Counted from the stretch's first letter, positions 2,283 through 63,534 are shown. The stretch: 64,000 nt of DNA from IMGVR_UViG_3300042540_001822:1-64000; one strand, 5' to 3'. Notes: generated by a model not told the origin, from the sequence alone. Numbers and translations are program-made.

Positions 2283-3431
2283 TTAATAAATCCCAAGATC
2301 CTCGAAGTCTGACATCATTTCTGTGTCACTTACCTCTTGATCAGTTAATTGAATTTTTTTCATCAATCTTTTGACAGCTGGATTTTGCATAATCGGATCT
2401 TTCCAAATTGGGGATAAGGCAAAAGATTTACCTTGAAGTGCCTGTGGTGAAATTGAATTTCTGATTGGATCTCTTTGTGCCTTACTCATCCTTTGAAATT
2501 TTTCAGTTGTAATAAGGTAAAAATATGCTGCCGTCCAAGAATTAAATTTTACTGCGTCATTATAAACCTCTTTTAAAACAGATTCTGGCATAAGACATCT
2601 CTTGGCTGAATTAACGGAGCATCTTTTGTCTAAAGGTAAACCTTCTAAAGAATACAATTGAAAATTATCTTCACAAGTAATGTAATATCCATCTCTACCC
2701 GCAGCAGGTGCTCCGATTAGTGTTTTTAGATTGTTATATCCACATTTGAAAATACCTGTGCTATTAAAAACTTTAGGACCTCCTTCTAAAGTTGATAAAT
2801 TACAATCTTGAACTTCAAAATTACGTTTTACATCACAATTTTCCGAACCTTGAAGAGAAACAAGACTTTGAGTATTTCCCAATTCGAAATCCCTACCTAC
2901 GAAATCTGGACATCCTTCTAAATTCTGGATTTTGCTTTCCCTAACGCGGAAATCCAGTCCTACTTTTCTGGGCGAACCAATTAAAGATTCAAGTTCATTA
3001 GAATTCACTTTGAAATTCCTTTTAACCTCCGTTGGAAAACCAGAAAAAGAAACTACAGGAAAACTAACTTCAAAATCATTTTCAATTGTACCGAATACAA
3101 CTTCAGGAACTAATTTTCCATTTTTAAACAAATGATTTCGGGTTTCTGGATTATTGTAAATATTTACCCCACCCTGTACGTTGATAATTCCGTCTTCTAA
3201 CTCCCAACTTCCTGAACAGATTGAATCTAGAACTTTTACCAGTTCCTCCGAAAATCCTGAAGAATCAGTAAGTGGTATATTTAAAGCTTTGCATGCTTCT
3301 TCGAAATCTACCCCTTGATTTTTACAGAATTCCCTAATTCTTTCTTTCCAATTTCTTAATTCTCTACTAGTATAAGACTCGTTTAGTTCTAAAAGTTTGG
3401 AGTAAAAATCAAAATCTTTGATTAAATGCAT
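2283..3431 (-). CDS. LRR-like repeat protein (L.SL.G.P..V..DF repeats) with C-terminal DFEDLGIY motif
   Basis: Repeats such as LESLIGSPRKVGLDF and IQNLEGCPDFVGRDF; ATG 3431 lies downstream of GATATATA (3450-3457). Confidence 0.75.
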   Translation of the reverse strand: MHLIKDFDFYSKLLELNESYTSRELRNWKERIREFCKNQGVDFEEACKALNIPLTDSSGFSEELVKVLDSICSGSWELEDGIINVQGGVNIYNNPETRNHLFKNGKLVPEVVFGTIENDFEVSFPVVSFSGFPTEVKRNFKVNSNELESLIGSPRKVGLDFRVRESKIQNLEGCPDFVGRDFELGNTQSLVSLQGSENCDVKRNFEVQDCNLSTLEGGPKVFNSTGIFKCGYNNLKTLIGAPAAGRDGYYITCEDNFQLYSLEGLPLDKRCSVNSAKRCLMPESVLKEVYNDAVKFNSWTAAYFYLITTEKFQRMSKAQRDPIRNSISPQALQGKSFALSPIWKDPIMQNPAVKRLMKKIQLTDQEVSDTEMMSDFEDLGIY

Positions 3432-3478
3432 TGGAGATATTTTTTTAATTATATATCTCAAAAATTTTAAAATTCTAA

Positions 3479-3943
3479 TTAGAAGTCACCAGGTGCAACT
3501 TGAAAACAGGGAATTCCGTTTCTTCTCCACATAGCAACCACCTTATCTCGGTCGTCGTAAACACAAAGAAGATTTTGTTTATCTGGAAATTCCTGATTTA
3601 GCCATTCCTCTTTTAAAACATCATCCGCTGTGAACATTCTGGAACCAGTTGCGGGCCTCATGAGCAACTTATTGGGTCGAATACCGTACATATCCAGCCA
3701 TTTCTCGGTTTCTTCTCTTGTTGCCTCACTTCTTCCGGAAAAAATAACCATGTTGAATCCAGCCTTTTGGAGGGATTTAAAAGATTCGATCACCGGAATG
3801 TTTGGTTTGTCCAAAGAAATGTTATTTGGATCGAAAAATTTAGGCCAATCAATTTTACCGCTGTCTTTTGTGGCCAGGGTTCTTCTTTCTCTGATGTCGG
3901 CCAATGTGCCGTCCAGGTCAAAGATAATTGTTTTATTTGTCAT
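3479..3943 (-). CDS. HAD 3'-phosphatase, T4 PseT/PNKP phosphatase-domain-like
   Basis: IIFDLDGTLAD, SGR, DDVLKE, VYDDRDKVVAMWRRNGIPCFQVAPGDF motifs. Confidence 0.85.
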   Translation of the reverse strand: MTNKTIIFDLDGTLADIRERRTLATKDSGKIDWPKFFDPNNISLDKPNIPVIESFKSLQKAGFNMVIFSGRSEATREETEKWLDMYGIRPNKLLMRPATGSRMFTADDVLKEEWLNQEFPDKQNLLCVYDDRDKVVAMWRRNGIPCFQVAPGDF

Positions 3944-4154
3944 TTGATTTTTGAGTTGGTACTCTAAGTATGATGAGAACAAGAATTGCTCCTAGGAAAG
4001 ATTTAAAGGTATAAACCACGTCAAAACCCATCCAATCCAAACCAAGCAAAAGTAGAAATGGAATGGCGAGGAAAATTGCTAGAACAAAGAAAATTACGAA
4101 ACTTGTGGCCCCTGCCGATGTTAATTTTCTGTTTAGTTTTTGAAGATCTGTCAT
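3933..4154 (-). CDS. small membrane protein
   Basis: Two hydrophobic segments; overlaps the next gene. Confidence 0.65.
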   Translation of the reverse strand: MTDLQKLNRKLTSAGATSFVIFFVLAIFLAIPFLLLLGLDWMGFDVVYTFKSFLGAILVLIILRVPTQKSNDK

Positions 4155-4173
4155 GTAGTTGAATTATTTTGAT

Positions 4174-4419
4174 TTAAAATTGTTCTTCCTCCCAGTATTT
4201 CACACCTGGTTCAGAACTGGCCCACACCTGTTTTCCATCTATGTCGATTCTGATGATGTTGTCCTTGAACTCAACCTTGGAAATGTAATTCTGTGGGCTC
4301 TTTATGTTGTCATAAACGTAAACCATTCCATCGTGACAGAAAAGTTTAACTACCGAACCTCCGGGTTGATGACTCAAAGGATTAGTTCTGTATTCATCTT
4401 GAACTTTGATTTCTTTCAT
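4174..4419 (-). CDS. hypothetical protein
   Basis: ORF in a tightly packed minus-strand run. Confidence 0.7.
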   Translation of the reverse strand: MKEIKVQDEYRTNPLSHQPGGSVVKLFCHDGMVYVYDNIKSPQNYISKVEFKDNIIRIDIDGKQVWASSEPGVKYWEEEQF

Positions 4420-4481
4420 GTTTAAATTTTTCGCTAAAGTAAGGCAGAAATTAGGTATTTTCTAATTTTTTAAAAAAAAAT

Positions 4482-5952: not shown

Positions 5953-6696
5953 TTATCCTATTTTTTCCCCTTCCCTCGTGAATTTATAATCCATCGAATC
6001 CATCCATTCGATTACAGCCTTATCTGAATTGATTGAACCATACTCTGCTTCTAATTCAGAATACAGTTCTCTAGATTTTTGTCTGGCCCATTTGGTTATG
6101 GAATCAGCCAAACTACCCAACCAATTGTCAAATTCTTTCTGCTCACTGGCATTGAAATTCCGTCCTTCCATGGGTTCTTCTACATCTATCTCTGCACTAA
6201 TTGTAAATTCATGATAATAGCGTGAACTATTTCTTTCGATGTTAATCCAAAAATCGTCAGGTGTTAAAGGGATAATTTTAGAATTGATTCCTAGCTCTTC
6301 GAATCCAGAAATCATAGCATCAATTTCGTCTTCTTCTTCTTTTTCTTCTTTTTCTTCTCCATAAGCAAACCACTTTACAGGTTGCAATTTAAGAGCTTCT
6401 TTAAAAAACTTTCCAACGTCTCTAACTCTGGCAGTGAAAGATGCACCATCTCCTTGAGACCAAAAACCGGAAAAATTACATTCAATATTTTCTAAACCCA
6501 ATTCCTCTAATCCGGATTTAAAATTTTCAATCACATCTTCGTACCACCAGGAATCTATCTTATCCCGGTATTCTTCTTTATAATTGGATAAAACCTTTTC
6601 CTGAATTTCCGGGGATAATTCATCGAATGAAAATTCTTGATTCTCTTCGTCAGATTCGAATAAACTGAAGTTCGAAAAGGGAATAATAAACCTCAT
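5953..6696 (-). CDS. acidic hypothetical protein with internal IDAMISGFEELGI motif
   Basis: N-terminus MRFIIPFSNFSLFE; GATATATA at 6701-6708. Confidence 0.75.
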   Translation of the reverse strand: MRFIIPFSNFSLFESDEENQEFSFDELSPEIQEKVLSNYKEEYRDKIDSWWYEDVIENFKSGLEELGLENIECNFSGFWSQGDGASFTARVRDVGKFFKEALKLQPVKWFAYGEEKEEKEEEDEIDAMISGFEELGINSKIIPLTPDDFWINIERNSSRYYHEFTISAEIDVEEPMEGRNFNASEQKEFDNWLGSLADSITKWARQKSRELYSELEAEYGSINSDKAVIEWMDSMDYKFTREGEKIG

Positions 6697-6713
6697 CCCT
6701 TATATATCTTTGA

Positions 6714-10144: not shown

Positions 10145-11002
10145 CTATGTTCCTAATTTTTTTAAAATTTCAGCTAAATTTCTAGCTCTTTCGCCAACCT
10201 GCTTAGCCCATCTTGATCTTAACATTTCAGATGCTGCTCTTTTAAATTTTTTAATTTTGAAATATTTTAAAAATGAATCGAATTTTAAAACACCGGTTGT
10301 TCCTAAATTAAAAACCATTTCTGTAAGAACACCTAATGCCGGCTCTGACATGTTTGTAGCCGAAGGTCCTAATATTCTACGTGCTCCTGCCAAAGCATTT
10401 TCTAAATCTAAAATTAGAAGATTCTCAGCTTGTTGTGGGGTTAGCTTTTGTGAACCTTTTTTTACTTTTGCTGAGTTAAGACCGATTTTCTTTAATTTTT
10501 CATCGGCGTCTTTTCTATTTAGATTAAATCCTACACCTACGGTGGGGATTCCTCTAGAATCCAAATACCTTTGAAATTTAACACCCTCGTGTTTTTTTAC
10601 TCTTTCTAGAATGGAGGAAATTATAGGATCTATTTTTGGATTAGCTTCCGATTGTTTAAGTCTTCGAAGATGGTTTTGAGCTTCTTGTTTATCTTTAAGG
10701 TCAAAAAGTCCTAATTCTCCAGTAATCGCGGATTGTACATCACGATATGAAAATTTAGGTGAAGAGGACATAATTTTGTTTACCATCTCCAATGTCTTCA
10801 AATCACCTATGGATCTTATTGCCTCTAAAAATTTTTTCTCGTCTGTTCCCAATCCACCAACCGAATTTTGGATTGAATTAGCAATATCCAATGTGTTAAT
10901 AGGTTGCCCAGTAGATTCATTTATTACGGAACGAGCAGAAAAAGATTTAAAATCTCGGAATTTAAAAATTCTAGAAGTAAAATTGAATTTCATCAAAAAC
11001 AA
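10145..11002 (-). CDS. T4-type (GH24) lysozyme with N-terminal annexin-like repeat
   Basis: HEG...YLDSRGIPTVGVGFNL and SRWAKQVGERA; N-terminal IANSIQNSVGGLGTDEKKFLEAI. Confidence 0.85.
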   Translation of the reverse strand: MFLMKFNFTSRIFKFRDFKSFSARSVINESTGQPINTLDIANSIQNSVGGLGTDEKKFLEAIRSIGDLKTLEMVNKIMSSSPKFSYRDVQSAITGELGLFDLKDKQEAQNHLRRLKQSEANPKIDPIISSILERVKKHEGVKFQRYLDSRGIPTVGVGFNLNRKDADEKLKKIGLNSAKVKKGSQKLTPQQAENLLILDLENALAGARRILGPSATNMSEPALGVLTEMVFNLGTTGVLKFDSFLKYFKIKKFKRAASEMLRSRWAKQVGERARNLAEILKKLGT

Positions 11003-11008: not shown

Positions 11009-11257
11009 TTAATTTTTAGAATGATAAGTAGTCGTATTTCCCGTTTCTTTACGGGTTAAAATCTGTAGTTGTCTTTCAGTAGCGAATCCCCTTTGTCTTT
11101 TGAAAATAGAATCAACCACACCGTTTAGGTAAGCATCTCCACCCACTATGTTTCTCCAATAAGCCTCAGATTTAGGCATTCTTTGTGTTCTTTTTTTAGT
11201 TCCAGGAAGTTCTTCATTTGCCTCTTGGATAAATTGGGTAAATTTGATTAAAGCCAT
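11009..11257 (-). CDS. hypothetical protein with CTS-like N-terminus
   Basis: MALIKFTQFIQE. Confidence 0.7.
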   Translation of the reverse strand: MALIKFTQFIQEANEELPGTKKRTQRMPKSEAYWRNIVGGDAYLNGVVDSIFKRQRGFATERQLQILTRKETGNTTTYHSKN

Positions 11258-11260: not shown

Positions 11261-11809
11261 TTAATTATTTTCTTCGTAGGATTTGATTGAATCTAGATTT
11301 TTGCCCACTAGAGTCATCAATTGTTGATTAACCTTTTTTAGGTTATCTATTATTTCATCCAATCTCATGTTATTTCTATAAACTTCGATGTGGTACATTT
11401 CCTGTTTTTTTGAAGATGAATTTCTACCCAATACATAAACCCCTTTAATATCAAATTGAGAAGAATCAGAGACTTCCCCAGAATCGTCTTGTTTGTTCAT
11501 AAGGTCAATTACTTCTTGAAAACTAAAGGTTCCATTTTTGATGGATTGAAAAATTTCTTCTCTCTCCTCTTCATCTATGTATTCATCAATTAAATCCTCG
11601 TCATAATAATTGAAAATTAAACCTGCTGCCTCTGATCTGGTGTGGGCTACACAAACAAATAAAAATCTGTCCAAGTCTCCTCCACAATTCGACTCCATGT
11701 CTAGCACCCAAGATTCTAAAGGTTGGTAAATTCCTAAATCTTCAAATCCAGAAATTAAATCTTCGATATCTTCGTTTTCAAATGTAATGAAATTTTTAAT
11801 GTTTTTCAT
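11261..11809 (-). CDS. acidic GFEDLG-motif protein
   Basis: MKNIKNFITFENEDIEDLISGFEDLGIY. Confidence 0.75.
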   Translation of the reverse strand: MKNIKNFITFENEDIEDLISGFEDLGIYQPLESWVLDMESNCGGDLDRFLFVCVAHTRSEAAGLIFNYYDEDLIDEYIDEEEREEIFQSIKNGTFSFQEVIDLMNKQDDSGEVSDSSQFDIKGVYVLGRNSSSKKQEMYHIEVYRNNMRLDEIIDNLKKVNQQLMTLVGKNLDSIKSYEENN

Positions 11810-11836: not shown

Positions 11837-12517
11837 CTAAAAAATTCCCAAATCAGAAAATCCAGAAAATAGTTCTAGTTCATCGTCAAAACCAGGTGGT
11901 ATATTTATTTTTGCTTTAATGGGAGCAAAATCAGGCCAGTTCAAAACGGGGGCAATGATATGTATTCCTTGCGCAGGAAAAAATTCAAATAATTTATTCC
12001 AACAATCTGGATTCAAAAAAGAAGAAGTTTCAAGAGCTTTCTTTACATTCCCACATGCTGTAGTCCCACATGCTGTCTTAGACTCCAAAAGAACGTCTTT
12101 GGCATTCCAATCCTTACCTTTTTTGTCTATGTCTTTAGACTTAAAAGACCACCCGACAGAAAATGGCGACCCTGAATAATTTTCAAGTGGATTATCATCA
12201 ACATTGAATTTCTTTTTTACAAAAAAAGGAAATCCAGTTAGGTCTTTGAAATCGTTACTATAGGCATGGAAACTGCCTGAGACCTTTCCAAATTTTAGAC
12301 CGTGGGGAATCGCTTTTAATCTTTGAAATGAACAATCAAAATCTCCTTCTACGTTAATTAATTTTGATTTCGGATCTTGAGACCAAGACCCCTTGGTGCA
12401 TTTATTTAACCAATCCTTGAATGGATTGGGCAGTTCGTAAAACTCTTCACCTGCATCATTCGTGGACCAATCGTAATCTGATTCTTTGAAGAGTTTGAAA
12501 TTTTGAAGGTACTTCAT
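11837..12517 (-). CDS. LRR-like repeat protein with C-terminal GFSDLGIF motif
   Basis: MKYLQNFKLFKE; DLTGFP..V...F repeats; paralog of 2283 and 19794. Confidence 0.75.
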   Translation of the reverse strand: MKYLQNFKLFKESDYDWSTNDAGEEFYELPNPFKDWLNKCTKGSWSQDPKSKLINVEGDFDCSFQRLKAIPHGLKFGKVSGSFHAYSNDFKDLTGFPFFVKKKFNVDDNPLENYSGSPFSVGWSFKSKDIDKKGKDWNAKDVLLESKTACGTTACGNVKKALETSSFLNPDCWNKLFEFFPAQGIHIIAPVLNWPDFAPIKAKINIPPGFDDELELFSGFSDLGIF

Positions 12518-12528: not shown

Positions 12529-13017
12529 TTATGTTTGTGGAAACTTGATTAAATCTGCCATTCCAAATCCAAATTCATTTTTAATTTTTCGATCTGCCTC
12601 GAGAAATTGTTCGATCGAATTTAAATTAAAACTGCTCTCAAATCCATCTGACCCTGGTTTGGGATGGTCAATGATCCAAAAATTATCGATGGTATACTCT
12701 TTGGCAAACCTATGACTAGTCATGAGATAACCCAAATTATAGGAATCAAACTTTTCTTCGGAAAATTCAGATAAAATTTCTTCTATCTCAGATTTTTCAA
12801 ACTCTGCGTTATATAAAAAACTTTCTACAATTTCAAATGAAGAATTCCCTTCGATAATAAGAAGTTCACCCGAATGATTATATTCCTCTTGCACATAATA
12901 TTCAATGAATGCCAATTTTTTAACCTTATTTATTCCAAGTTCTTCAAATCCGGCAATCATGGAATCAATGTCAGATTCAGAAATCAAAAAACTCTGGATA
13001 TTTTGGAGATGCTTCAT
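12529..13017 (-). CDS. acidic GFEELG-motif protein
   Basis: MKHLQNIQSFLISESDIDSMIAGFEELGI; C-terminus FGFGMADL shared with 24346. Confidence 0.75.
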   Translation of the reverse strand: MKHLQNIQSFLISESDIDSMIAGFEELGINKVKKLAFIEYYVQEEYNHSGELLIIEGNSSFEIVESFLYNAEFEKSEIEEILSEFSEEKFDSYNLGYLMTSHRFAKEYTIDNFWIIDHPKPGSDGFESSFNLNSIEQFLEADRKIKNEFGFGMADLIKFPQT

Positions 13018-13036: not shown

Positions 13037-13048
13037 GATATATATATC
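13037..13048. promoter_or_regulatory. palindromic GATATATATATC, putative bidirectional late promoter
   Basis: Lies between divergent genes 13017(-) and 13068(+); each strand reads GATATATA. Confidence 0.6.
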
Positions 13049-13067: not shown

Positions 13068-13394
13068 ATGCGACATTTGGTTATTTATGAGTCTTGGTCC
13101 CAAGAGAAAACGATAGTTTTAGAATCTATCCGAAATCGTGCTAGAATTATTTTGAGCGTTCAGGCGGGCAGAATTCAAACAATAGATAATCCTAGGGGGA
13201 TTAGATTCCCTTGGTCTGAAGGCCAGACTTTAAACAGAAGTCTAGAAACTTGGGCTTGCAACAACGGGTTTACCATCAATGGAAAAGATCCATGTCCAGA
13301 AGAAAAAATATTTGGTATTAAAACCTCGGATATCCCAAAAGGTCACGAATGGAGAATGATGTTTCCGAATAAATTTAAAAAAACTAATTATTAA
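13068..13394 (+). CDS. hypothetical protein
   Basis: MRHLVIYESW N-terminus. Confidence 0.7.
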   Translation: MRHLVIYESWSQEKTIVLESIRNRARIILSVQAGRIQTIDNPRGIRFPWSEGQTLNRSLETWACNNGFTINGKDPCPEEKIFGIKTSDIPKGHEWRMMFPNKFKKTNY

Positions 13395-14920: not shown

Positions 14921-15026
14921 AATTATGGTTTTTAATTCAATGTCCGATAATTACCACGGAAAATAAAGCCATGAAATATTTTTAATTTTTTTTCCAAGAT
15001 ATATAATTAAAAATTAGAATTTTAAA

Positions 15027-15485
15027 ATGAAAAATGTGATCAGATACGAAGACTTTGATGCCAATTCAAAACAAAGTATCCAAGAGTCTTTTTTTGGTTC
15101 AAATAAACCAAAACTTGGTTCTCTCCAGCCATACAAAAGACCAGGTATGCTCCAACAAATGACACGCAAGGCAAAAAGCTTTGTTGGTATAGAAAACAAA
15201 CAGGATCGGGAGAACTTCGAAAAGTTGATCACTGCACTGATGAATCCCCCTTACCCAGATTTTATCAGGGGAATCAAGGATGAAACTGGTTCTGACGGGG
15301 TGACCGCCATGGTGGCCTACACAGATATGGGAAATTTATTGGTTAGATGTGACGATAAAGATCCTATGATTTCTTTCAAAGGAAGAAATTTAGATTTAGC
15401 TGATTTAGAGGAAGAGTGTGAACGACTAGTCAGTCTTCTGAAATTAGAGGCAGAAGACCACGGTCCATATCCTAATTTTCACTAA
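15027..15485 (+). CDS. hypothetical protein with CTS-like N-terminus
   Basis: MKNVIRYEDF...IQE; GATATATA at 14998-15005. Confidence 0.7.
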   Translation: MKNVIRYEDFDANSKQSIQESFFGSNKPKLGSLQPYKRPGMLQQMTRKAKSFVGIENKQDRENFEKLITALMNPPYPDFIRGIKDETGSDGVTAMVAYTDMGNLLVRCDDKDPMISFKGRNLDLADLEEECERLVSLLKLEAEDHGPYPNFH

Positions 15486-18919: not shown

Positions 18920-19432
18920 TTATCTCCGGGGACTTTTTGTGTCTCCCAGAATTTTTTTCACCATGCCATACACATCCCCATATTTGTCCATTGTTTGAAG
19001 TGTTTCTTCGTCCTTAATATCACAGTCTCGCAAATGAACTTTTTCCCCATTCAAGGGCTTAAAAAAAACTTTTAAAATACCTCTTCCCCTTTTGATATCT
19101 ACGTATGGTGAATATAAATATTCAACTTCTATAATGATATTACCCTTCAAATAAAATTCTAAAGAAAAATCACTTTCTCCTGCACGGCCTGTGACTCTAA
19201 TTACCTTTTCCCCCGTAGATTCTTCGATTTGTTTTTCAACATATCCCACCATTGAATTTTTATCATTCTCTGAGTTGAATTTATCCCAAATTTCAACTTC
19301 TGGATAAGGTGGGGGTTTTTGGTTTACCCCCAGATCCTCGAACCCTGAAATTAAATCATCAATTTCGTTTTGATTTGGAATTTCGTTTTCTTTAATTAAC
19401 CTTAAATCTTCGAATTTAAAAAGATGTTTCAT
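18920..19432 (-). CDS. GFEDLG-motif protein
   Basis: MKHLFKFEDL...EIDDLISGFEDLGV. Confidence 0.75.
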   Translation of the reverse strand: MKHLFKFEDLRLIKENEIPNQNEIDDLISGFEDLGVNQKPPPYPEVEIWDKFNSENDKNSMVGYVEKQIEESTGEKVIRVTGRAGESDFSLEFYLKGNIIIEVEYLYSPYVDIKRGRGILKVFFKPLNGEKVHLRDCDIKDEETLQTMDKYGDVYGMVKKILGDTKSPRR

Positions 19433-19467: not shown

Positions 19468-19779
19468 CTATTCATAGCGATCGTCAAAAACTTTTTGTGC
19501 GAATTTCTCATCAAATTCTTTTAACTCTGATGGTGTTAGATCCTCACCATTTAAATATTTAGCATTCGTAATCCAAAATTTAAAAAATCCGTCATAATCT
19601 AAGCCTTCGACCTCGAGTTCAATGGAATCATCACTCACCCATTTGCCCTTGAAATACAAATCTTTAGGACCCGGTTTGGGATTAATCCCTAGCACCTCGA
19701 ATCCTGTAAGCATACCATCTAGTTCATCCTCTATATTCTCTTTTAAATTGAAATCTTCAAATTTAAAAAGATGTTTCAT
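19468..19779 (-). CDS. GFEVLG-motif protein
   Basis: MKHLFKFEDF...ELDGMLTGFEVLGI; AATATATA at 19784-19791. Confidence 0.75.
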   Translation of the reverse strand: MKHLFKFEDFNLKENIEDELDGMLTGFEVLGINPKPGPKDLYFKGKWVSDDSIELEVEGLDYDGFFKFWITNAKYLNGEDLTPSELKEFDEKFAQKVFDDRYE

Positions 19780-19793
19780 GTGTTATATATTTT

Positions 19794-20984
19794 CTAAAAC
19801 AACCCTAGCTCGTCAAATCCCGAGAACAAATCAAATTGGTCTTCGTATTCTGGTGGAATCTTTATTCCGGCTTTCACCTTCGGATCTAGATACTTCCAGA
19901 TAGGAGCCAACATGTGAACCGTCTTGCCCGGGTCCCGTTGGAATTCCTTGTTAAACCAGAGACTAGAAAGATAGGGCAAAGTCCCCATCATTTTTTTTGC
20001 ATCTGGATTTCCCTCCTTTAAAACTTCTAACCAACCGTTCACATCCCACTTGGCATCAAACCAATAGCCGGGTTTCTGATTTTTCATAAAATCCAATGTT
20101 CCTTTGGTTGTCAACACAAAATCATCAGAAATAACATCGCCTTGAACATGAAAAGGAGCCCCTTCCAGGCTTTTTAAAAGGATATTTTCTTCAAAGCGAA
20201 AATCTCCACCTATTTCCGAAGGAGAACCTCTTAGATTTTCAATCTTATTCCATGAACAGTGAAAATTTTTATCTACTGTGCGGGGAAACCCCATTCCGTC
20301 CATGGTGGTGAGATTTAAACCCGAAGCATCAAAATTGCCTTTCACATGGCCAAATTTGATGCCATTTTTGGCAGGTAAAGATGAAATATTTCGGTACGAT
20401 GGATGATGAATCTTATTTGATAAATTCACATCCCCATCCACATCGACCTCGCCGGTTCTGGAATTATAAATCCAGGTTTGAGGTTTTCCATTCTTAGTTT
20501 TACAAACAGATTCTAAAAATTTTAATTGTTGCGTAGTCAGGTTAGGATGTGGAGTTGAAAAAAATAAAGAGTCTTCTTCATCCCTAATTTTTTTAATTTC
20601 TGCCAAAATCGCCTGGTCCTCTGGACTTGGTTTGCGGCCAATTTTTTTTAGCCATCTGGAAAAATAACGTTCAATAAGATAAAAAAACATGGTGTCTATG
20701 TCTTCTTGTCCAAAAGTAGCAGATATTCCTGATTTTGGGGTTCTAACATAGCCTGCCTTGGTCAGGTGAAATCTTTTGCCATCCGGGGCTTCTACAACAA
20801 AGGTATCTTTTTGAACGTAGGGCGATTTTGAAACCTCTGAGAATCCCATTTGAGACAGAATATTCCATCTCGGAGAGTCTTCCAGTCGCAAAGGCCACGT
20901 TTTTAATTTTGGGGTTCTGACCGAAATTTTCCCGAAATCCTCCTGAAGTAAATTAAAATTTTTGAAATTTTGAAGATATTTCAT
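19794..20984 (-). CDS. LRR-like repeat protein with C-terminal GFDELGLF motif
   Basis: IENLRGSPSEIGGDF, LKSLEGAPFHVQGD; GATATATA at 21004-21011. Confidence 0.75.
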   Translation of the reverse strand: MKYLQNFKNFNLLQEDFGKISVRTPKLKTWPLRLEDSPRWNILSQMGFSEVSKSPYVQKDTFVVEAPDGKRFHLTKAGYVRTPKSGISATFGQEDIDTMFFYLIERYFSRWLKKIGRKPSPEDQAILAEIKKIRDEEDSLFFSTPHPNLTTQQLKFLESVCKTKNGKPQTWIYNSRTGEVDVDGDVNLSNKIHHPSYRNISSLPAKNGIKFGHVKGNFDASGLNLTTMDGMGFPRTVDKNFHCSWNKIENLRGSPSEIGGDFRFEENILLKSLEGAPFHVQGDVISDDFVLTTKGTLDFMKNQKPGYWFDAKWDVNGWLEVLKEGNPDAKKMMGTLPYLSSLWFNKEFQRDPGKTVHMLAPIWKYLDPKVKAGIKIPPEYEDQFDLFSGFDELGLF

Positions 20985-24345: not shown

Positions 24346-24894
24346 TTACACTTTCCTTTTGGGCATTTTGTTTAAATCTGCCAATCCAAATCCAAAATTG
24401 CTTTTCAGTTCTTCATCCGTATCGACGGCTCCGTTCACTCCAACAAGACTCGTGTACACATAGCAGTTAGGATTAAATTTTTTGGATGTGGGCCAATCGA
24501 TGACCCATTCGGCATCCACTTCAAATTCTCCTTCGTCTTCCAAGATTTGACATAATTGATACCACGTGAAATCTTTTTGGCCCTGAAAATTCTTTTCTAA
24601 TTTTTTAATTTGAGATTCCTGGTTTTTTTGGAATTGCTCGAAATCCACGTCATACCCTAAAATAAAACTAACAGCCTTAAAGACAACTGGAAAAATATCC
24701 GTCTCGTCCGTCGGGATGGCGAGCAAAAAGCAACTGTGATCATTGTGTTCATAGGAAGTATATGTGATTTCCCCCACATAAATTTGAGGTTTTTGATTGA
24801 TGCCCAAGTCTTCAAATCCTTGAACGAGAGAATCCAAATCAAATTCTCCAAATTCCGATTCAAAAATCGATTTTAAAAGGGTGAGTCTTGGCAT
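24346..24894 (-). CDS. acidic GFEDLG-motif protein, paralog of 12529
   Basis: LDSLVQGFEDLGI; WVIDWP; FGFGLADL. Confidence 0.75.
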   Translation of the reverse strand: MPRLTLLKSIFESEFGEFDLDSLVQGFEDLGINQKPQIYVGEITYTSYEHNDHSCFLLAIPTDETDIFPVVFKAVSFILGYDVDFEQFQKNQESQIKKLEKNFQGQKDFTWYQLCQILEDEGEFEVDAEWVIDWPTSKKFNPNCYVYTSLVGVNGAVDTDEELKSNFGFGLADLNKMPKRKV

Positions 24895-24979
24895 AAAATT
24901 TAAAAAGTAATTTTACATTATATATTCTTTTTGCAAAATGAATTGATTGTTTATATCAAATTGGCTTTGCAATTTTCCG

Positions 24980-25462
24980 TCAATCCATTTCCCACATAGA
25001 CTCGTGAAAAGCCCTGATAAGGTCATCTACATTTCTTATTTTTACCAATTGATCTTCATCGTATTCGTCATCAAACATGTAGATTTGCCGATGTTCTTTT
25101 TCCTCTGGGGTAAGCTTGTAGGCAAAGGTCTGACCCCCGATATTGACAAAAGCAAGAACATGGATGGGCAAAACTTTTGAAAAATCCCCATCATAATCAT
25201 CTGCATAACCGCTATCGAGCCATCTATCATCGTCTTGTGGGTTTTGCCAAACCAGAAATGGAGTCTCTGGGTCTTTTCGATCTATGGTCAGAGAAAAGGG
25301 TTTTTTATTTATACCCAATTCTTCAAACCCAGTAATTAAATCATCAATTTCTGTGTTGTTTGTTGTTTGATCTTTTTGGTTCATCTGTTTCTCCATTTGT
25401 GCCACCATATGATCCAAGTTGTGAGAGAAATCAAATGATTCGAATAATTTAATGTGTCGCAT
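24980..25462 (-). CDS. GFEELG-motif protein
   Basis: MRHIKLFESF...EIDDLITGFEELGI. Confidence 0.75.
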   Translation of the reverse strand: MRHIKLFESFDFSHNLDHMVAQMEKQMNQKDQTTNNTEIDDLITGFEELGINKKPFSLTIDRKDPETPFLVWQNPQDDDRWLDSGYADDYDGDFSKVLPIHVLAFVNIGGQTFAYKLTPEEKEHRQIYMFDDEYDEDQLVKIRNVDDLIRAFHESMWEMD

Positions 25463-25486: not shown

Positions 25487-25687
25487 CTAATGTGTGTTTA
25501 TACAGTATTTTTTCACTTTTTCATTTCTCTCAATAAAAAAATCTACTCTCTTTTCTAATTCATCAGGAGTTGCCATAGGTTTGAACACAATACCATGTGT
25601 ATCTACCCAAAGTTCAACATCACAAGCACCATAAGATTCTTCTTTTAGAAGTTCTACCAAAATTTCTTTAAGTTTATTTGTTTCCAT
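25487..25687 (-). CDS. hypothetical protein
   Basis: Operon-packed ORF. Confidence 0.6.
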   Translation of the reverse strand: METNKLKEILVELLKEESYGACDVELWVDTHGIVFKPMATPDELEKRVDFFIERNEKVKKYCINTH

Positions 25688-25940
25688 TTATTCTTTCTTT
25701 AATTTTAGTTTCTAATTCACGAACAATCCTTTCCTTTTCTTCTAATTCTTTTTCGGATTTTTCAATTTCATCTTTTAATTCTTGATGATATTTTTTCATT
25801 TTTTTAAATTTAAGAACTGGATTTATTTCTGAATGAATATCATCAAACACCTCCTTGATAGTTTTTCCAAAGAGTATTTTACTCCAACTTACTTCTTCGT
25901 TTAGAAAATCCCCCAATTTCTTAATTTTTATATCTTTCAT
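25674..25940 (-). CDS. coiled-coil protein with CTS-like N-terminus
   Basis: KKLGDFLNEE; GATATATA at 25962-25969. Confidence 0.65.
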   Translation of the reverse strand: MKDIKIKKLGDFLNEEVSWSKILFGKTIKEVFDDIHSEINPVLKFKKMKKYHQELKDEIEKSEKELEEKERIVRELETKIKERINGNK

Positions 25941-25999
25941 AACATTGATTGATTTTTAGAATATATATCTAAATGAAACATTAATGTATCCCAGGAACG

Positions 26000-38549: not shown

Positions 38550-38978
38550 TTAAGCATTTAGTGGCTCATCAAAGATTACATTCCAACTATCTAATGGTTG
38601 CCAACCGCCACCCATAGTCATTACTTCTAAATCTGATGATGGTATATTTTTGAACGTAATATATTCGTCACCTTTATTATTTACTATTCTTGGTGATAGT
38701 TGAAAATCATCAGTCAATTTTGTTCTCAAAACACACATTTTACTAATCCCACCTTTTGATTTAGCATAGTATTTAGCATAATCTAAATCGTTTGTAAAAC
38801 TAATTGATGGTTGTTCTTCACCAGTTCTATTTGGTTTCATATATCCATCGTACTGTATATTCATTGCTTGTCCTTTACCTGTTCCATGATAAATATAATC
38901 ATCTTGTTTTATATCTTCATTTACAAATTGATTGAATGATTTAACCTCATCAATCATATCTCGTATTTCTTTACTCAT
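38550..38978 (-). CDS. ADP-ribosyltransferase-like protein with CTS-like N-terminus
   Basis: YIYHGT...PSISFTNDLDYAKYYA; N-terminus …KSFNQFVNE. Confidence 0.55.
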   Translation of the reverse strand: MSKEIRDMIDEVKSFNQFVNEDIKQDDYIYHGTGKGQAMNIQYDGYMKPNRTGEEQPSISFTNDLDYAKYYAKSKGGISKMCVLRTKLTDDFQLSPRIVNNKGDEYITFKNIPSSDLEVMTMGGGWQPLDSWNVIFDEPLNA

Positions 38979-39091: not shown

Positions 39092-39340
39092 CTATTTAAT
39101 CTTAGTTCCTTTTGGAACAAATTTCTTCAAATCTTTTTTCAATTGTTTATCTACTGATTTAGAGTATTCTTCATCATTTTCAATCATCCAAGTATGAAGT
39201 TGAAGAAATTCTTTTTCTGATAGAGTTTCACCATCTAATTTACGTTGAATAAGTTTAGATATTTTACTATCTATAAAATCAGATATATTCAAGTTTTCTT
39301 GATGTTCGTTGAAACTTTGTATGTGTTTATTACCTTTCAT
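39092..39340 (-). CDS. hypothetical protein with CTS-like N-terminus
   Basis: KHIQSFNE; AATATATA at 39360-39367. Confidence 0.6.
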   Translation of the reverse strand: MKGNKHIQSFNEHQENLNISDFIDSKISKLIQRKLDGETLSEKEFLQLHTWMIENDEEYSKSVDKQLKKDLKKFVPKGTKIK

Positions 39341-39382
39341 CTTCGTAAATTGTTTTTAGTATATATTAAAAAGAAAACCTAA

Positions 39383-39789: not shown

Positions 39790-40284
39790 TTAAAATCCCC
39801 CGCCGCCCCCTTTAAAATTAGGAACTAAATTGTATTTGATCCTATTATCATTCAGCATTTTTTGGACATCATCAAACTTATGATCATTTTTAAGATGTTC
39901 TAAAATGTCAATTTGTATAATGTAATCAAATATTGGAAAAGTTTCTTTGTTGGTAAAAATTCGTTCTTCCGATTGTGATTTATTAAATTTAAAGTAGGTG
40001 ACTGGTTTTATAACAAAACGATTTGATATTTTATCCCCGTCTAACATTATCCTGATACCACCCCATGTAAGAGATTTGTTTCTTGTACAGGAAACACTAT
40101 AATCGTAATTATATTTAGGCAAGTCATTATATCTTGTCAGAAATGTTTTGCTTTCTAATATAAAATATAAATTCATAAGATGGGTGAAATGGTATATTAT
40201 TCCTTCATTTTTTGATTCCTCTAAATGATCCTTCATCAAGAAGTTTTTAAACTTGTCAATGTGTTGTCTCATTTCTTTACTCAT
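39790..40284 (-). CDS. ART-like protein (DarT/DUF4433-like YHFT motif) with CTS-like N-terminus
   Basis: IIYHFTHLMNLYFILES...SVSCTR; AATATATA at 40296-40303. Confidence 0.5.
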   Translation of the reverse strand: MSKEMRQHIDKFKNFLMKDHLEESKNEGIIYHFTHLMNLYFILESKTFLTRYNDLPKYNYDYSVSCTRNKSLTWGGIRIMLDGDKISNRFVIKPVTYFKFNKSQSEERIFTNKETFPIFDYIIQIDILEHLKNDHKFDDVQKMLNDNRIKYNLVPNFKGGGGGF

Positions 40285-40416
40285 AGTTTTATCTTTATAT
40301 ATTAAATCTCAGAACTAAATGTTTTGAAGAAACTTTATGGGCAATGCTAATAATCAGATGTCTTAACAAAATTATACATTTAACATTCTACTTCATTTAA
40401 ATCCGATATAACTCGA

Positions 40417-49521: not shown

Positions 49522-49619
49522 ATGTGGTTGGTTTATGTCGTAAAGATACGACATTTTTACTAAGAATAAAACCAAAACCCCGAAAAGTTTTTCCCCAATT
49601 TATGGGGCTAAGTAAATTG

Positions 49620-49693
49620 TGATTCCACTAGGACTCGAACCTAGGACCTACAAATTATGAGTTTGCAGCTCTAACCAACTGAGCTATGGAATC
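49620..49693 (-). tRNA. tRNA with CAT anticodon (elongator Met or Ile2)
   Basis: Canonical cloverleaf GATTCCA/TGGAATC, loop CTCATAA, TTCGAGT; CCA not encoded. Confidence 0.92.
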
Positions 49694-59747: not shown

Positions 59748-59992
59748 ACTTTTACAAGTTTAAATTTTTCACCACCGATTACAATCTCTTTACCTTCACA
59801 GGGTTTGGGTCGTTTGTCTATGATGTAACCATCTGAATCCTCATAGTAAATTCTATTACCTTGAGAATTGTATTCACGCTTTGTCCAACCTCCATTTGAA
59901 TTCTCCCAGTAGATTACTTTACCATTCTTGTCTTTGACTACCAATTCACCATTGGTCTTAAAATCCCATTTGATTTGTTGTGCAATTGTCAT
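59744..59992 (-). CDS. 21-aa repeat family paralog 2 (1 full unit)
   Basis: ATGA-coupled to its neighbours. Confidence 0.8.
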   Translation of the reverse strand: MTIAQQIKWDFKTNGELVVKDKNGKVIYWENSNGGWTKREYNSQGNRIYYEDSDGYIIDKRPKPCEGKEIVIGGEKFKLVKV

Positions 59993-60303
59993 ACTTTCAC
60001 GAGTTTAAATTTTTCACCACCAAATTCTACAATCTTACCTTCACAGGTTTTAGGTCGGTTGTCTATGATTAGACCATCTGAATCCCCAAAGTAGATTTGA
60101 TTACCTTTAGAATCGTATTCACACTTTTCCCAATCCCCATGTGAATTCTCCCAGTAGATTAATCTACCTTGAGAATCGTATTCATACTTTACCCAAAGTC
60201 CAGTTGAATCCTCAGAGTAGATTACTCTACCATTCTTGTCTTGGATATCCAAGGAACCATTGGTCTCAAAATCCCATTTGATTTGTTGTGCGATTGTTTT
60301 TAT
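59989..60303 (-). CDS. 21-aa repeat family paralog 3 (2 full units; ATA in place of ATG)
   Basis: In-frame (I)KTIAQQIKWDFETNG upstream of the track start. Confidence 0.7.
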   Translation of the reverse strand: MKTIAQQIKWDFETNGSLDIQDKNGRVIYSEDSTGLWVKYEYDSQGRLIYWENSHGDWEKCEYDSKGNQIYFGDSDGLIIDNRPKTCEGKIVEFGGEKFKLVKV

Positions 60304-60674
60304 ACTTTTACAAGTTTAAATTTTTCACCACCGATTAGGATTTCTTTACCTTCACAGGGTTTGGGTCGTTTGTCTATAATTCCACCATTTGAATTCTCGT
60401 AGTAGAGTTCATTGCCTTGAGAATCCCGTTCATACTTTGCCCAATCACCATTTGAATTCTCTATGTAGATTCTATTTCCTTTGGAATCCAGTTCCCTCTT
60501 TACCCAAAATCCACCTGAATTTTCATAGTAGATTTCATTTCCTTGGGAATCGTATTCTCGTTTTGCCCAATCCCCAAATGAATTCTCCCAGTAGATTCTA
60601 TTACCATTCTTGTCTTTGATTGTCAATTTACCATTGGTCTTGAAATCCCATTTGATTTGTTGTGCTATTGTCAT
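60300..60674 (-). CDS. 21-aa repeat family paralog 4 (3 full units)
   Basis: ATGA-coupled. Confidence 0.8.
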   Translation of the reverse strand: MTIAQQIKWDFKTNGKLTIKDKNGNRIYWENSFGDWAKREYDSQGNEIYYENSGGFWVKRELDSKGNRIYIENSNGDWAKYERDSQGNELYYENSNGGIIDKRPKPCEGKEILIGGEKFKLVKV

Positions 60675-60985
60675 ACTTTCACAAGTTTAAATTTTTCACC
60701 ACCAAATTCTACTATCTTACCTTCGCAAGACTTGGGTCGTTTGTCTTTAATTAGACCATCTGAATTCTCAAAGTAGATTTGATTGCCTCCAGAATCGTAT
60801 TCATACTTTGCCCAAAATCCATCTGAATTCTCAAAGTAGATTACTTTTCCTCGAGAATCGTATTCACGCTTTAACCAATACCCAGTTGAATCCTCAGAGT
60901 AGATTGGGTTACCATTCTTGTCTTTGATTTCCAAGGGGCCATTGGTGAAATCCCATTTGATTTGTTGTCCTATTGTTTGGTTCAT
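60671..60985 (-). CDS. 21-aa repeat family paralog 5 (2 full units)
   Basis: Start MNQTIGQQ; promoter at 61005. Confidence 0.8.
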   Translation of the reverse strand: MNQTIGQQIKWDFTNGPLEIKDKNGNPIYSEDSTGYWLKREYDSRGKVIYFENSDGFWAKYEYDSGGNQIYFENSDGLIKDKRPKSCEGKIVEFGGEKFKLVKV

Positions 60986-61511: not shown

Positions 61512-61575
61512 AATTATATTTTATTAATGAGCCAAATGTAGAAAACAAAATTGGATCAAAAAAATTAAACCCCAC

Positions 61576-61601: not shown

Positions 61602-61615
61602 ATTTTGGATTGGAT

Positions 61616-62122
61616 TTAAACAACTTTGAAAATCAATGTTATTCTTGGATTCATAAACATTCCAGATCCAGATACAACTGCTTTACAGTGATTTAAGAAT
61701 TCTGGTGTGTATTTTCTCTTATCCGGGTCTTCTAAAACCTCTTCACATTGATCTTTTTCAATCTCTGGATTTTCATTAAAGTTATTTATAAAATCTTCCA
61801 ATTCCCTTTTGAAATCCTCTGGTGAGATTGAAGGATCTGCTGCAAATATTACCATTCCATTATCACGTTGACTAAGATTCATACCATTTTGGTCACCCCC
61901 AATTATTTCTTCAACACCTTGTTCAAGGTCTAATGTTTCGCCAGGGGTTGAACCTTCTAAATCACGCAGTTTTTGAGAGGGATTAGTGTGATAGGTTACC
62001 ATATAAGTGTTAGGTTGTGTCCAATCAATGGGGGAACCGTCTTTTGTGAGTTTTGAAAAATCACCAGTTGCTGTGATAATTGGATTGGTTCCAAAATTTT
62101 CGAATAATTTAATGTGTTTCAT
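61616..62122 (-). CDS. hypothetical protein with CTS-like N-terminus
   Basis: MKHIKLFENF; GATATATA at 62139-62146. Confidence 0.75.
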   Translation of the reverse strand: MKHIKLFENFGTNPIITATGDFSKLTKDGSPIDWTQPNTYMVTYHTNPSQKLRDLEGSTPGETLDLEQGVEEIIGGDQNGMNLSQRDNGMVIFAADPSISPEDFKRELEDFINNFNENPEIEKDQCEEVLEDPDKRKYTPEFLNHCKAVVSGSGMFMNPRITLIFKVV

Positions 62123-62176
62123 TTTTTTGTTTTTTTTTTATATATCTAAATGTGAGGAAGAATTTTTGGTTGGTTT

Positions 62177-62551
62177 CTATTTCAGATTCTTGGCAATAAC
62201 TTCCCATTGATTTAAAATCTCTTCCATCATATTTGTGCCATTTTTCAAAATTGCGTAGTAGCATTCTTCATATCTCAGTTCCTCAAGATTCTCCTCCAAT
62301 TCACTCACAGATTTAACCAAACCATGTGAAAGATTTTCCAAAAAATTTTCCCAATTTCTTTCAATGGGTGCATTGTTGTAGGATTTCACTTGTTCTAGGG
62401 TTTTCTGCCATACAGATTCTTCTGCTTCTTGCAAAGTTAGAAAAGTTCCAACCGGATCTTTCTCACCCCTATATAAATTGTAGTACATAACAAGGAATGG
62501 TCCTGAATTAGATGAAGCCCCAAAATTTTCGAATAATTCTACGTGTTTCAT
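62177..62551 (-). CDS. hypothetical protein with CTS-like N-terminus
   Basis: MKHVELFENF; GATATATA at 62567-62574. Confidence 0.75.
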   Translation of the reverse strand: MKHVELFENFGASSNSGPFLVMYYNLYRGEKDPVGTFLTLQEAEESVWQKTLEQVKSYNNAPIERNWENFLENLSHGLVKSVSELEENLEELRYEECYYAILKNGTNMMEEILNQWEVIAKNLK

Positions 62552-62736
62552 TTTTTATTTTTTTTTTATATATCTAAATGTAAGAAAAAATTTTGGAGCA
62601 AAAAAACCAAACCCCACAAAAAACCCGGTTTGAAGACCGGGTTCTTAATTTTTGTATTTTAAAGTTTTGTTTTTTAATTTAAGTTCTCGTTAGCACTGCG
62701 TATATACGCAAAACGTTATAAGTAATAAAACAAAAA

Positions 62737-63153
62737 TTATGAGTTTATTATATTAATTAACGATTTCTTACAATTTTCAATAACTTCATTTGAGACATAT
62801 TCATCTTTGTATGTTTTTAATTCGTCCAGGTAGAATTTTGATAATTCTTTTAACCCTTCATCCGAAGTTAGAAATCTATAACCGATCCTTCCAAGTTCAT
62901 AATCAAAATCATTATCACCCTGATTTATTTTAATAAACTTAATTAAGAAATCTTTATCAAAATTACCTTCATTTGGTTTTACTTTATATCGTTGAACTCC
63001 ACCATATAATCCTTCGTATATGGATTCAAATAAATCATGAATTCCCATCATACCTGTAAAAAAATCAATAATAATATTATTATAATTCATACTTTCTTGT
63101 TTTAGTTGTTCGTTAATAAACTGACTTAGAGTTCTTTTAATATTCTTTTTCAT
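62737..63153 (-). CDS. hypothetical protein with CTS-like N-terminus and cassette-type NS* tail
   Basis: LSQFINE; followed by GTTATAAGTAAT at 62715 and an attC-like half-site. Confidence 0.65.
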   Translation of the reverse strand: MKKNIKRTLSQFINEQLKQESMNYNNIIIDFFTGMMGIHDLFESIYEGLYGGVQRYKVKPNEGNFDKDFLIKFIKINQGDNDFDYELGRIGYRFLTSDEGLKELSKFYLDELKTYKDEYVSNEVIENCKKSLINIINS

Positions 63154-63186
63154 ATTTATTATTTTTATATGTATAGTTTTAATTTT

Positions 63187-63534
63187 TTACCCACCCACTT
63201 TTGAAATAGATGTTTTAGTTGCCCCACATTTAAAACCATCATCAAAAATCAAATTTACCATAGCACTATCATTTTTACCTCGTTCTACCCAAGTTACAGT
63301 TGCTATATCACCAGATAATGCCTTATCATATAACCCATCATGTTGTCCAGCCATATGTATTTCTCTTTTAAAATGTTTGCCTAACGCTTTTTTCATCATT
63401 TTTTCGTAGCTTTCCATTTGATTTTTAATGATTTCAGGATTGACTAAAACCTTATCACCTTTTTTAAAATCAGTAGTTATTTCTTCATTCAAGAATTGTT
63501 GCCAGTTCTTTACTTTGTTTATTTGTTCTCCCAT
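63187..63534 (-). CDS. hypothetical protein with CTS-like N-terminus
   Basis: KVKNWQQFLNEE. Confidence 0.7.
   Translation of the reverse strand: MGEQINKVKNWQQFLNEEITTDFKKGDKVLVNPEIIKNQMESYEKMMKKALGKHFKREIHMAGQHDGLYDKALSGDIATVTWVERGKNDSAMVNLIFDDGFKCGATKTSISKVGG

Follow-up and report, generated by a model that had tools for sequence, protein, structure and literature searches.

Organization of tagged genes within the window

We analyzed a 64,000-nucleotide stretch of DNA (IMGVR_UViG_3300042540_001822:1-64000, referred to here as the window), which is part of a 219-kb record from a huge freshwater phage. The window contains about 22 genes whose products begin with a similar, roughly 11-residue N-terminal tag, and many of these genes are preceded by a (G/A)ATATATA box (Table 1). 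At least 60 such genes are present in the whole record. A preliminary description had counted about 20 of these proteins, likened their N-termini to the capsid-targeting sequence of the phage T4 internal proteins, and listed 12 boxes. We found that all 12 boxes exist, and each lies 4-24 nt upstream of the ATG of a same-strand gene. Several of the N-termini previously listed (genes at 25674, 38550, 39790, 62737, and 63187) carry the aromatic pair further from Met1, at residues 9-18, and are either weaker members or have miscalled starts.

Table 1. Tagged genes and (G/A)ATATATA boxes of the window. A and B denote paralogue families.
Position	Strand	Feature	N-terminus or sequence	Remarks
2283..3431	-	Tagged gene, divergent member of LRR family A	MHLIKDFDFY...	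382 aa; box 18 nt upstream
3450..3457	-	Box	GATATATA	18 nt before the ATG at 3431
5953..6696	-	Tagged gene	MRFIIPFSNFSLFESDEE	247 aa; phrog_5162 of unknown function; internal SGFEELG motif at residue 131
6701..6708	-	Box	GATATATA	4 nt before the ATG at 6696 (short-spacing class)
10145..10993	-	Lysozyme-like protein	MKFNFTSRIFKFRDF...	PHROG endolysin, tail-lysozyme, and internal-virion-lysozyme hits; last gene examined of the operon that starts at the 13041 box
11009..11257	-	Tagged gene	MALIKFTQFIQEANEE	82 aa; F-I-Q-E is the most T4-like site in the window; no PHROG family
11261..11809	-	Tagged gene of family B	MKNIKNFITFENE	Followed by LISGFEDLGI
11837..12517	-	Tagged gene of LRR family A	MKYLQNFKLFKE	C-terminal ...LFSGFSDLGIF
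12529..13017	-	Tagged gene of family B	MKHLQNIQSFLISE	
13037..13048	.	Palindrome with boxes on both strands	GATATATATATC	Each box 23 nt from a divergent tagged gene (12529-13017 on the minus strand and 13068-13394 on the plus strand)
13068..13394	+	Tagged gene	MRHLVIYESW	G003 orthologue begins MKHLQLYESF
14998..15005	+	Box	GATATATA	21 nt before the ATG at 15027
15027..15485	+	Tagged gene	MKNVIRYEDF	152 aa; no known family
18920..19432	-	Tagged gene of family B	MKHLFKFEDL...LISGFEDLGV	
19468..19779	-	Tagged gene of family B	MKHLFKFEDF	
19784..19791	-	Box	AATATATA	4 nt before the ATG at 19779
19794..20984	-	Tagged gene of LRR family A	MKYLQNFKNF	396 aa
21004..21011	-	Box	GATATATA	19 nt before the ATG at 20984
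24346..24894	-	Family B gene with a looser tag	MPRLTLLKSIFESE...LVQGFEDLGI	
24919..24926	-	Box	AATATATA	24 nt before the ATG at 24894
24980..25462	-	Tagged gene of family B	MRHIKLFESF	
25674..25940	-	Gene with a displaced tag	MKDIKIKKLGDFLNEE	
25962..25969	-	Box	GATATATA	21 nt before the ATG at 25940
38550..38978	-	Gene with a displaced tag	..MIDEVKSFNQFVNE	Start may be miscalled
39092..39340	-	Gene with a weak tag	MKGNKHIQSFNEHQE	
39360..39367	-	Box	AATATATA	19 nt before the ATG at 39340
39790..40284	-	Gene with a displaced tag	MSKEMRQHIDKFKNFLMKD	
40296..40303	-	Box	AATATATA	11 nt before the ATG at 40284
61616..62122	-	Tagged gene	MKHIKLFENF	168 aa; see text
62139..62146	-	Box	GATATATA	16 nt before the ATG at 62122
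62177..62551	-	Tagged gene	MKHVELFENF	124 aa
62567..62574	-	Box	GATATATA	15 nt before the ATG at 62551
62737..63153	-	Gene with a displaced tag	MKKNIKRTLSQFINEQ	
63187..63534	-	Gene with a displaced tag	MGEQINKVKNWQQFLNEE	
63940..63947	-	Box	GATATATA	4 nt before the ATG of an untagged membrane-protein gene (63618-63935), which heads the run 63618 to 62737

The tag is position-specific, conserved, and found on unrelated domains

We next questioned whether the resemblance among N-termini was specific to their position relative to Met1. An aromatic residue at both positions 7 and 10 occurs in 40 of 399 ATG-ORFs of the record, while 5.7 were expected from internal frequency and 4-9 were found at most other offsets (17 at 8/11). 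The consensus is M-K-H-[LI]-x-x-F-x-x-[FY]-E. Position 4 is L, I, or V in 40 of 40 of these proteins, and [LIVMF]-x-E falls within residues 6-15 in 34 of 40, compared to 77 of 359 other proteins. The Glu is not at a fixed place (8, 11, or 13), and 6 of 40 tags lack any [LIVMF]-x-E. The same position-specific tag occurs in 31 unrelated proteins of a complete 373-kb relative (G003) and in 38 proteins of the distant 462-kb phage LR756500, against 2-11 at other offsets apart from the adjacent 8/11 register (15 in G003 and 9 in LR756500). A T4-type Vibrio phage used as a control shows no such peak. In LR756500 the consensus is MKYIKEYEEFLNE, and [LIVMF]11-x-E13 is present in 19 of 38 tagged proteins compared to 17 of 503 others.

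Since much of the raw count in the record comes from two paralogue families, we removed residues 1-16 and clustered the remaining sequences. After paralogues were collapsed, 18, 31, and 29 independent clusters remained in the record, G003, and LR756500, respectively, against 6-7 expected. We considered whether the shared start could be a nucleotide-level feature, such as a translation-initiation region for short-leader late mRNAs, or a by-product of duplication and recombination of a promoter-plus-first-codons cassette with no role for the peptide. Tandem family A genes do share the box, spacer, and first codons almost exactly, many boxes lie only 4 nt from the ATG, and the first codons are AT-rich in all genes. 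However, synonymous codons are mixed at the conserved residues, family A uses GC-rich codons for the same peptide, and GC in the first codons equals that of other genes in this record. Furthermore, 31 of 31 tagged proteins in G003 are singletons, and the peptide is conserved across orthologues down to 30% identity and across phages with 40% polymerase identity. We regard a purely nucleotide-level origin as very unlikely.

The tag also behaves as a separate element. Among 31 homologues of the gene at 61616-62122, the tag is the most conserved segment of an otherwise divergent family; in 22 aligned homologues, H3 and E8 are invariant and L6, F7, and F10 are at least 90% conserved, while mean column identity is 36%. 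AlphaFold2 (AF2) predicts residues 1-10 of this protein to be disordered and the rest to form a globular fold with no match in PDB or BFVD. Across two unrelated families, residues 1-10 and 1-14 have a pLDDT below 50 and are predicted to be disordered ahead of confident folds. The tag is found on LRR, lysozyme-like, LysM, ATP-grasp, CHAP, SLT, PG_binding_1, OmpA-like, and adenylate-kinase domains.

A (G/A)ATATATA box tracks tagged genes and, in relatives, head genes

The window has 16 matches to (G/A)ATATATA against 6.9 expected, and none of 100 shuffles reached 16. Genome-wide, 49 of 68 boxes lie 40 nt or less upstream of a same-strand ATG, and the box is strongly associated with tagged genes (odds ratio 14, p = 2e-15). 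In this record it also precedes an endolysin-like gene and a tail-fibre-like gene. In relatives, the box lies upstream of the prohead-protease gene in 50 of 52 clade loci and of the gene after the capsid gene in 51 of 52. The sequence logo shows only G-ATATATA, with no -35 element. These data support late expression of the tagged genes well, although the public RNA runs we searched hold only contigs of relatives, with no usable 5' ends, and transcription start points remain inferred.

Relatives encode a prohead protease, a capsid protein, and a gp55-like sigma factor

We reasoned that if the tag is a T4-type capsid-targeting sequence and the box a T4-type late promoter, a T4 gp21-type prohead protease and a late sigma factor should be encoded as well, as the preliminary description anticipated. 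The record itself has no protease, capsid gene, or gp55-like gene. Synteny and its repeat-bounded ends indicate that it is a fragment, which ends where the structural module begins in relatives, so the link rests on those relatives. All five relatives examined, four of them rated 100% complete by CheckV, have a Peptidase_S77 protease gene next to a gp23-like capsid gene, and both proteins are also present in LR756500. The capsid protein carries ...HYHSLNE|SAGAY, invariant in 52 of 52 loci, and the coiled-coil-rich gene just after the capsid gene carries the tag in 39 of 52 loci. A gp55-like sigma factor is present in five of five relatives at 76-82% identity to the copy in relative G005, which matches phrog_234, late sigma factor, at 1.4e-14. 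A profile built from the protease's own 14-residue repeats does not preferentially find the tags, and complex prediction for protease plus peptide gave no answer.

A possible expanded capsid-targeting system

Every prediction of the preliminary description that could be checked by computation came out as expected, though for the protease and the sigma factor only in relatives. The window is part of a fragment of a huge T4-related freshwater phage, whose complete relatives are 350-435 kb. We propose, with moderate confidence, that the tag is the clade's version of the T4 capsid-targeting sequence, in a greatly expanded system of this type. We hypothesize that the hydrophobic residue at 4 and the aromatic residues at 7 and 10 form one face of a short helix that docks the protein onto the scaffolding core while the prohead is built, that a gp21-type (Peptidase_S77) prohead protease then cuts after a nearby Glu in a [hydrophobic]-x-E context, and that the mature protein stays free inside the head and is delivered to the next cell with the DNA. 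Docking, cleavage, packaging, and injection are inferred. No virion proteome or cleavage data exist for any member of the clade. Some tagged proteins are ordinary-looking enzymes (adenylate kinase, ATP-grasp) whose packaging is not obviously useful, and packing 30-60 different proteins is far beyond what is documented for T4. The genes would be transcribed late from the single-element promoter, probably read by a gp55-like late sigma factor. Since the box sits either about 4 nt or 15-26 nt before the ATG, some of these mRNAs may have almost no leader.

Many tagged proteins are cell-wall enzymes or binders, which in other phages often sit on the tail, and LRR arrays could be receptor-binding modules. 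Together with the variable Glu position, this raises the possibility that the tag is a docking signal for the tail, baseplate, neck, or capsid surface, for example for arrays of LRR receptor-binding proteins and wall-degrading enzymes sharing one adaptor, and it need not be cut. We consider this unlikely since a disordered tag of 10-13 residues is short for a structural anchor, the closest sequence analogue is the T4 head-targeting signal, the tag is on the gene right after the capsid gene in most loci, and [LIVMF]-x-E is enriched just after the aromatic pair. It is similarly doubtful that the tag serves localization in the infected cell, recognition by a phage chaperone or export route, or timed degradation. 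Nothing shows packaging directly, tagged adenylate kinase and ATP-grasp enzymes would also make sense as intracellular enzymes, and several peptidoglycan enzymes must reach the wall. However, the tag is amphipathic and charged, is not a hydrophobic signal peptide, has no lipobox, co-occurs with the head-gene promoter, and resembles the T4 signal at the residues that matter in T4.

A broader reading is possible but tentative: a whole group of huge phages, from this lake clade to LR756500, whose polymerase is only about 40% identical, might use one conserved 10-13-residue T4-like tag to load 30-60 or more different proteins, roughly a tenth of their genes, into the capsid. This would be the largest injected protein repertoire known for any phage. 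Fast-evolving tandem LRR families would then serve as injected host-takeover or anti-defence proteins, and the tag would let one read the injected proteome of uncultured huge phages directly from sequence.

Comparison with known systems

T4 IPII and IPIII begin MKTYQEFIAE and IPI begins MKTFKEF (AF158101). Mutational work puts targeting on residues 4 and 7 and processing on residues 8 and 10 (PMC9026906). Similar to the T4 signal of 10-19 residues, which is cleaved by gp21, the tag described here is at the extreme N-terminus, starts with M-K, has hydrophobic or aromatic residues three apart, often with a possible cleavage site of the [L/I]-x-E type nearby, is portable between unrelated proteins, and is probably made late. 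In LR756500 the heptad Y-E-E-F-L-N-E nearly matches Y-Q-E-F-I-A-E of T4. The cargo set is likewise hypervariable between related phages, as only 101 of 399 proteins are shared with G003. In contrast to T4, the register is shifted by three residues (4, 7, and 10 instead of 4 and 7), the Glu is at 8, 11, or 13, the cargo includes large tandem LRR families, and there are 30-60 or more tagged proteins per genome (6-16% of ORFs), where T4 has a handful.

The giant phages phiKZ, 201phi2-1, and SPN3US pack tens of different proteins in the head, a T4-related protease cuts these ejection (inner-body) proteins after Glu, and paralogous cargo families share identical N-termini (PMC5694885). Their cleavage motif is [S/A/G]-x-E, their propeptides are often longer than 100 residues, and no short common N-terminal tag has been described for them, while the present clade is T4-like in polymerase, capsid protein, and late sigma factor.

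The T4 late promoter TATAAATA, read by gp55, gp33, and the gp45 clamp, is likewise a single AT-rich 8-bp element with no -35 element, placed before head and other late genes. The element found here differs in its sequence, G-ATATATA with G at -1 in 70-80% of sites, and in its bimodal spacing to the ATG.

Genomic context of the record

The 219,475-bp IMG/VR virus record that contains the window (G000) has 35.8% GC, was rated 88% complete by CheckV, and comes from freshwater lakes. The record contains a split T4-like family-B DNA polymerase, with its two ORFs about 19 kb apart, as in the relatives. We found that the nearest records in the phage collection are the huge uncultured phages LR756500 to LR756504 and the Prevotella Lak phages, at 29-40% polymerase identity, while no near-identical cultured phages were found. 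IMG/VR holds a large clade of relatives at 58-96% polymerase identity, and four of these are rated 100% complete by CheckV (three with direct terminal repeats, at 373, 430, and 434 kb, and one linear record of 349 kb).

The record itself has no gp23-like capsid gene, no S77 protease, and no gp55-like gene, and the head module of the window's own phage was not found among the IMG/VR capsid-gene loci. Both ends of the record lie in 9-bp-period collagen-like tandem arrays, and the record ends of the complete relative G003 (69% polymerase identity) lie in similar arrays, which probably explains why the assembly broke and why the structural module is missing. Gene order against G003 shows that the right end of the record corresponds to G003 position about 117 kb, exactly where the structural module of G003 (about 5-117 kb) begins. 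Based on this synteny, we infer that the record is a fragment of a much larger genome.

A position-specific N-terminal tag and its associated box

The preliminary description had placed (G/A)ATATATA boxes upstream of genes whose N-termini resemble the T4 capsid-targeting sequence. All 12 of its box positions are correct. The window has 16 (G/A)ATATATA sites against 6.9 expected, and no shuffle reached 16. In the whole record, 49 of 68 boxes lie 40 nt or less upstream of a same-strand ATG.

We next questioned whether the N-terminal likeness was real. Loose regular expressions were uninformative, as F..F-type patterns were not enriched or were only about twofold enriched. The likeness is real, however, once it is anchored to Met1. 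An aromatic residue at both positions 7 and 10 occurs in 40 of 399 ORFs, against 5.7 expected and 4-9 at most other offsets (17 at 8/11). The consensus is M-K-H-[LI]-x-x-F-x-x-[FY]-E, position 4 is L, I, or V in all 40, and [LIVMF]-x-E lies within residues 6-15 in 34 of 40 compared to 77 of 359 other proteins. Two paralogue families, a 22-member family of about 270 residues and an 11-plus-3-member family, inflate the count. After residues 1-16 were deleted and the remaining sequences clustered, 18 independent groups remained against about 7 expected.

The tag is conserved, portable, and predicted to be unstructured

We asked whether the same position-specific signal was present in other phages. 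G003 has 31 proteins with the 7/10 pair, all singletons, and the first 400 kb of LR756500 (about 40% polymerase identity, 24% GC) has 38, in 29 clusters. Other offsets give 2-11, apart from the adjacent 8/11 register (15 in G003 and 9 in LR756500). A T4-type Vibrio phage used as a control shows no peak at any offset. Since a shared start could also be a nucleotide-level feature or a recombination artefact, we examined codon usage and found that conserved residues use mixed synonymous codons and that in this record the 5' GC content of tagged genes equals that of other genes, indicating that the constraint is on the peptide. For the window gene 61616-62122, 31 homologues were found, down to 30% identity, and the decapeptide MKHIKLFExF is the best-conserved segment: H3 and E8 are invariant and L6, F7, and F10 are at least 90% conserved, against a mean column identity of 36%. 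Together with the number of groups that remain after clustering, these data contradict a nucleotide-level or recombination origin of the tag.

AlphaFold2 gives confident folds for the protein encoded by this gene and for the large family (pLDDT 83.8 and 92.5), while it leaves residues 1-10 and 1-14 below pLDDT 50. A fold search with the model of 61616-62122 found no match in PDB or BFVD. The large family is a leucine-rich-repeat (LRR) solenoid plus a helical domain. Other tagged proteins carry lysozyme-like, LysM, and ATP-grasp domains in this record, and CHAP, SLT, PG_binding_1, OmpA-like, and adenylate-kinase domains in G003. Searches of Pfam and PHROGs gave nothing for 20 tagged proteins of the window region.

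A second short motif, [DE]-x-L-[IF]-S-G-F-[ED]-[ED]-L-G-[IL], occurs in 35 proteins of this record, and every one of them also carries the N-terminal tag. This motif forms the last 8 residues of the LRR family (...LFSGFDELGLF-stop), follows the tag after 10-35 residues in family B, and is internal in two other proteins. It is absent from G003 and from the other loci compared for it. The second motif could be a further docking or cleavage site.

Comparison with the T4 capsid-targeting sequence

In the T4 record, IPII and IPIII begin MKTYQEFIAE, IPI begins MKTFKEF, and gp23 is cut after ...AFGSFLTE. Published mutagenesis assigns targeting to residues 4 and 7 and processing to residues 8 and 10 (PMC9026906). 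The tag keeps a hydrophobic residue at position 4 and an aromatic residue at position 7, and adds an aromatic residue at position 10 and a Glu shortly after, although the position of the presumed cleavage is not fixed. In LR756500 the consensus is MKYIKEYEEFLNE, in which Y-E-E-F-L-N-E matches Y-Q-E-F-I-A-E of T4 with a three-residue shift, and [LIVMF]11-x-E13 occurs in 19 of 38 tagged proteins compared to 17 of 503 others. A homologue of the LRR family in a T4-type Vibrio phage, which has an S77 protease, begins MCTFEEWFGE.

Head machinery in relatives

All five relatives examined, and LR756500, have a Peptidase_S77 domain at the start of a 632-678-residue ORF that is directly followed by a gp23-like capsid gene. 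In the five clade relatives, the long C-terminal extension of the protease ORF carries about 13-16 tandem 14-residue repeats of the type ..YSEYLAENLD.., while in LR756500 these repeats are degenerate. This extension may be a built-in scaffold with many [LV]-A-E cleavage sites. We hypothesized that the tag mimics one unit of this repeat, but this was not supported, since a profile of the repeats does not preferentially hit N-termini, and there remains only a visual resemblance for some tags, such as MEKLKSFSEFLAE in G003. Complex prediction of the protease domain of G005, one of the five relatives, with a tag peptide gave no answer and is evidence neither way.

The capsid protein has ...HYHSLNE/SAGAY, invariant in 52 of 52 loci, which is a plausible L-x-E maturation site at residue 44. 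The gene just after the capsid gene is rich in charged coiled-coil sequence and carries the tag in 39 of 52 loci, while most of the others have H7/F10 followed by F-L-x-E.

The box and late transcription

The logo of the box is G-ATATATA with no -35 element. The box is strongly linked to tagged genes (31 of 65 against 20 of 334, odds ratio 14, p = 2e-15), and many of the 20 exceptions carry displaced tags. In this record it also precedes an endolysin-like gene and a tail-fibre-like gene, and in 52 clade loci it lies within 60 nt upstream of the protease gene in 50 and of the post-capsid gene in 51. A gp55-like late sigma factor (phrog_234, E = 1.4e-14) is present in all five relatives, and the four other copies are 76-82% identical to the G005 protein. 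A Bacteroidota-type TAnnTTTG early promoter was not clearly enriched (49 genes against 35 for the reverse-complement control).

The spacing from box to ATG is bimodal in both this record and G003, at about 4 nt and at 15-26 nt. If transcripts start 5-7 nt after the box, as appears to be the case in T4, the first class would be essentially leaderless. RNA data did not provide usable 5' ends. Two RNA runs look like DNA of relatives, while contigs from two metatranscriptome runs (freshwater and river) match relatives of gene 61616-62122, with one identical piece at 62975-63192, which is consistent with transcription but cannot exclude DNA carry-over.

A possible expanded capsid-targeting system

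The simplest account of these data is a T4-type capsid-targeting system enlarged to dozens of cargo proteins, which would be transcribed late, docked to the scaffolding core through the tag, released by the S77 protease, and delivered on infection. Packaging, cleavage, and injection are inferred, and the protease, capsid, and sigma factor evidence comes from relatives rather than from this record. We cannot exclude that the tag is a docking signal for another part of the virion or a late signal unrelated to the virion. The cargo set is highly variable, since only 101 of 399 proteins have a G003 homologue and most tagged ones do not, and this resembles the hypervariable internal-protein loci of T4-like phages (PMC9026906).

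Huge phages are known almost only from metagenomes, and most of their genes have no assigned role. If this tag marks head-packaged proteins, it sorts 6-16% of all ORFs per genome, a sizeable share of otherwise unassignable ORFs, into one functional class that is made late, carried in the virion, and delivered with the DNA. It would also point to a protein-injection strategy on a scale not described before. Furthermore, the tag gives a simple rule for finding such proteins in other genomes, and the analysis identifies the probable late promoter of the clade and hints that some late mRNAs are nearly leaderless. While capsid-targeting sequences are known from T4, we found no paper, among those searched, linking them to huge phages, and no description of this tag.

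Other sequence features

Coordinates of features in the window, the whole record (G000), loci (L numbers), and relatives
Location	Strand	Feature
Window 1-300 and G000 219,092-219,475 (L008:15092-15475)		Collagen-like tandem arrays at both contig ends
Window 338-2276		Two adjacent HNH-endonuclease-like genes (phrog_1314)
Window 11261-11809, 12529-13017, 18920-19432, 5953-6696; L001:12429-13247 (C-terminus)		Examples of the second short motif
Window 6697-6708, 19780-19791, 63936-63947, and many sites in L001-L003		Spacing between box and ATG
Window 13037-13048		Palindromic GATATATATATC that provides a box on each strand, each 23 nt from a divergent tagged gene
Window 40418-40660		ORF made of tandem MVKSRAES repeats
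Window 41197-41556 and 51870-52220		Paralogue pairs in the 41-55 kb region
Window 47792-48151, 59436-60985; G000 138387-139996, 149114-151384		17-member family of small proteins
Window 49619-49693	minus	Single tRNA-Met (CAT) gene
Window 61655-62078 and 62975-63192		Matches to metatranscriptome contigs
G000 181894-183048 and 202484-203887		Two ORFs of the family-B DNA polymerase
L102:11463-13493 (G005), L105:10884-12854 (G003); also G001, G002, G004 and LR756500		Prohead protease fused to a long C-terminal extension

The 41-55 kb region of the window, which neighbours the ORF of tandem repeats, has higher GC (about 0.40). In addition to the tagged families, the record contains a family of small proteins, 82-150 aa, starting MTIAQQIKWDFKTNG..., that sits in three tandem clusters, and these proteins have no tag and no box.
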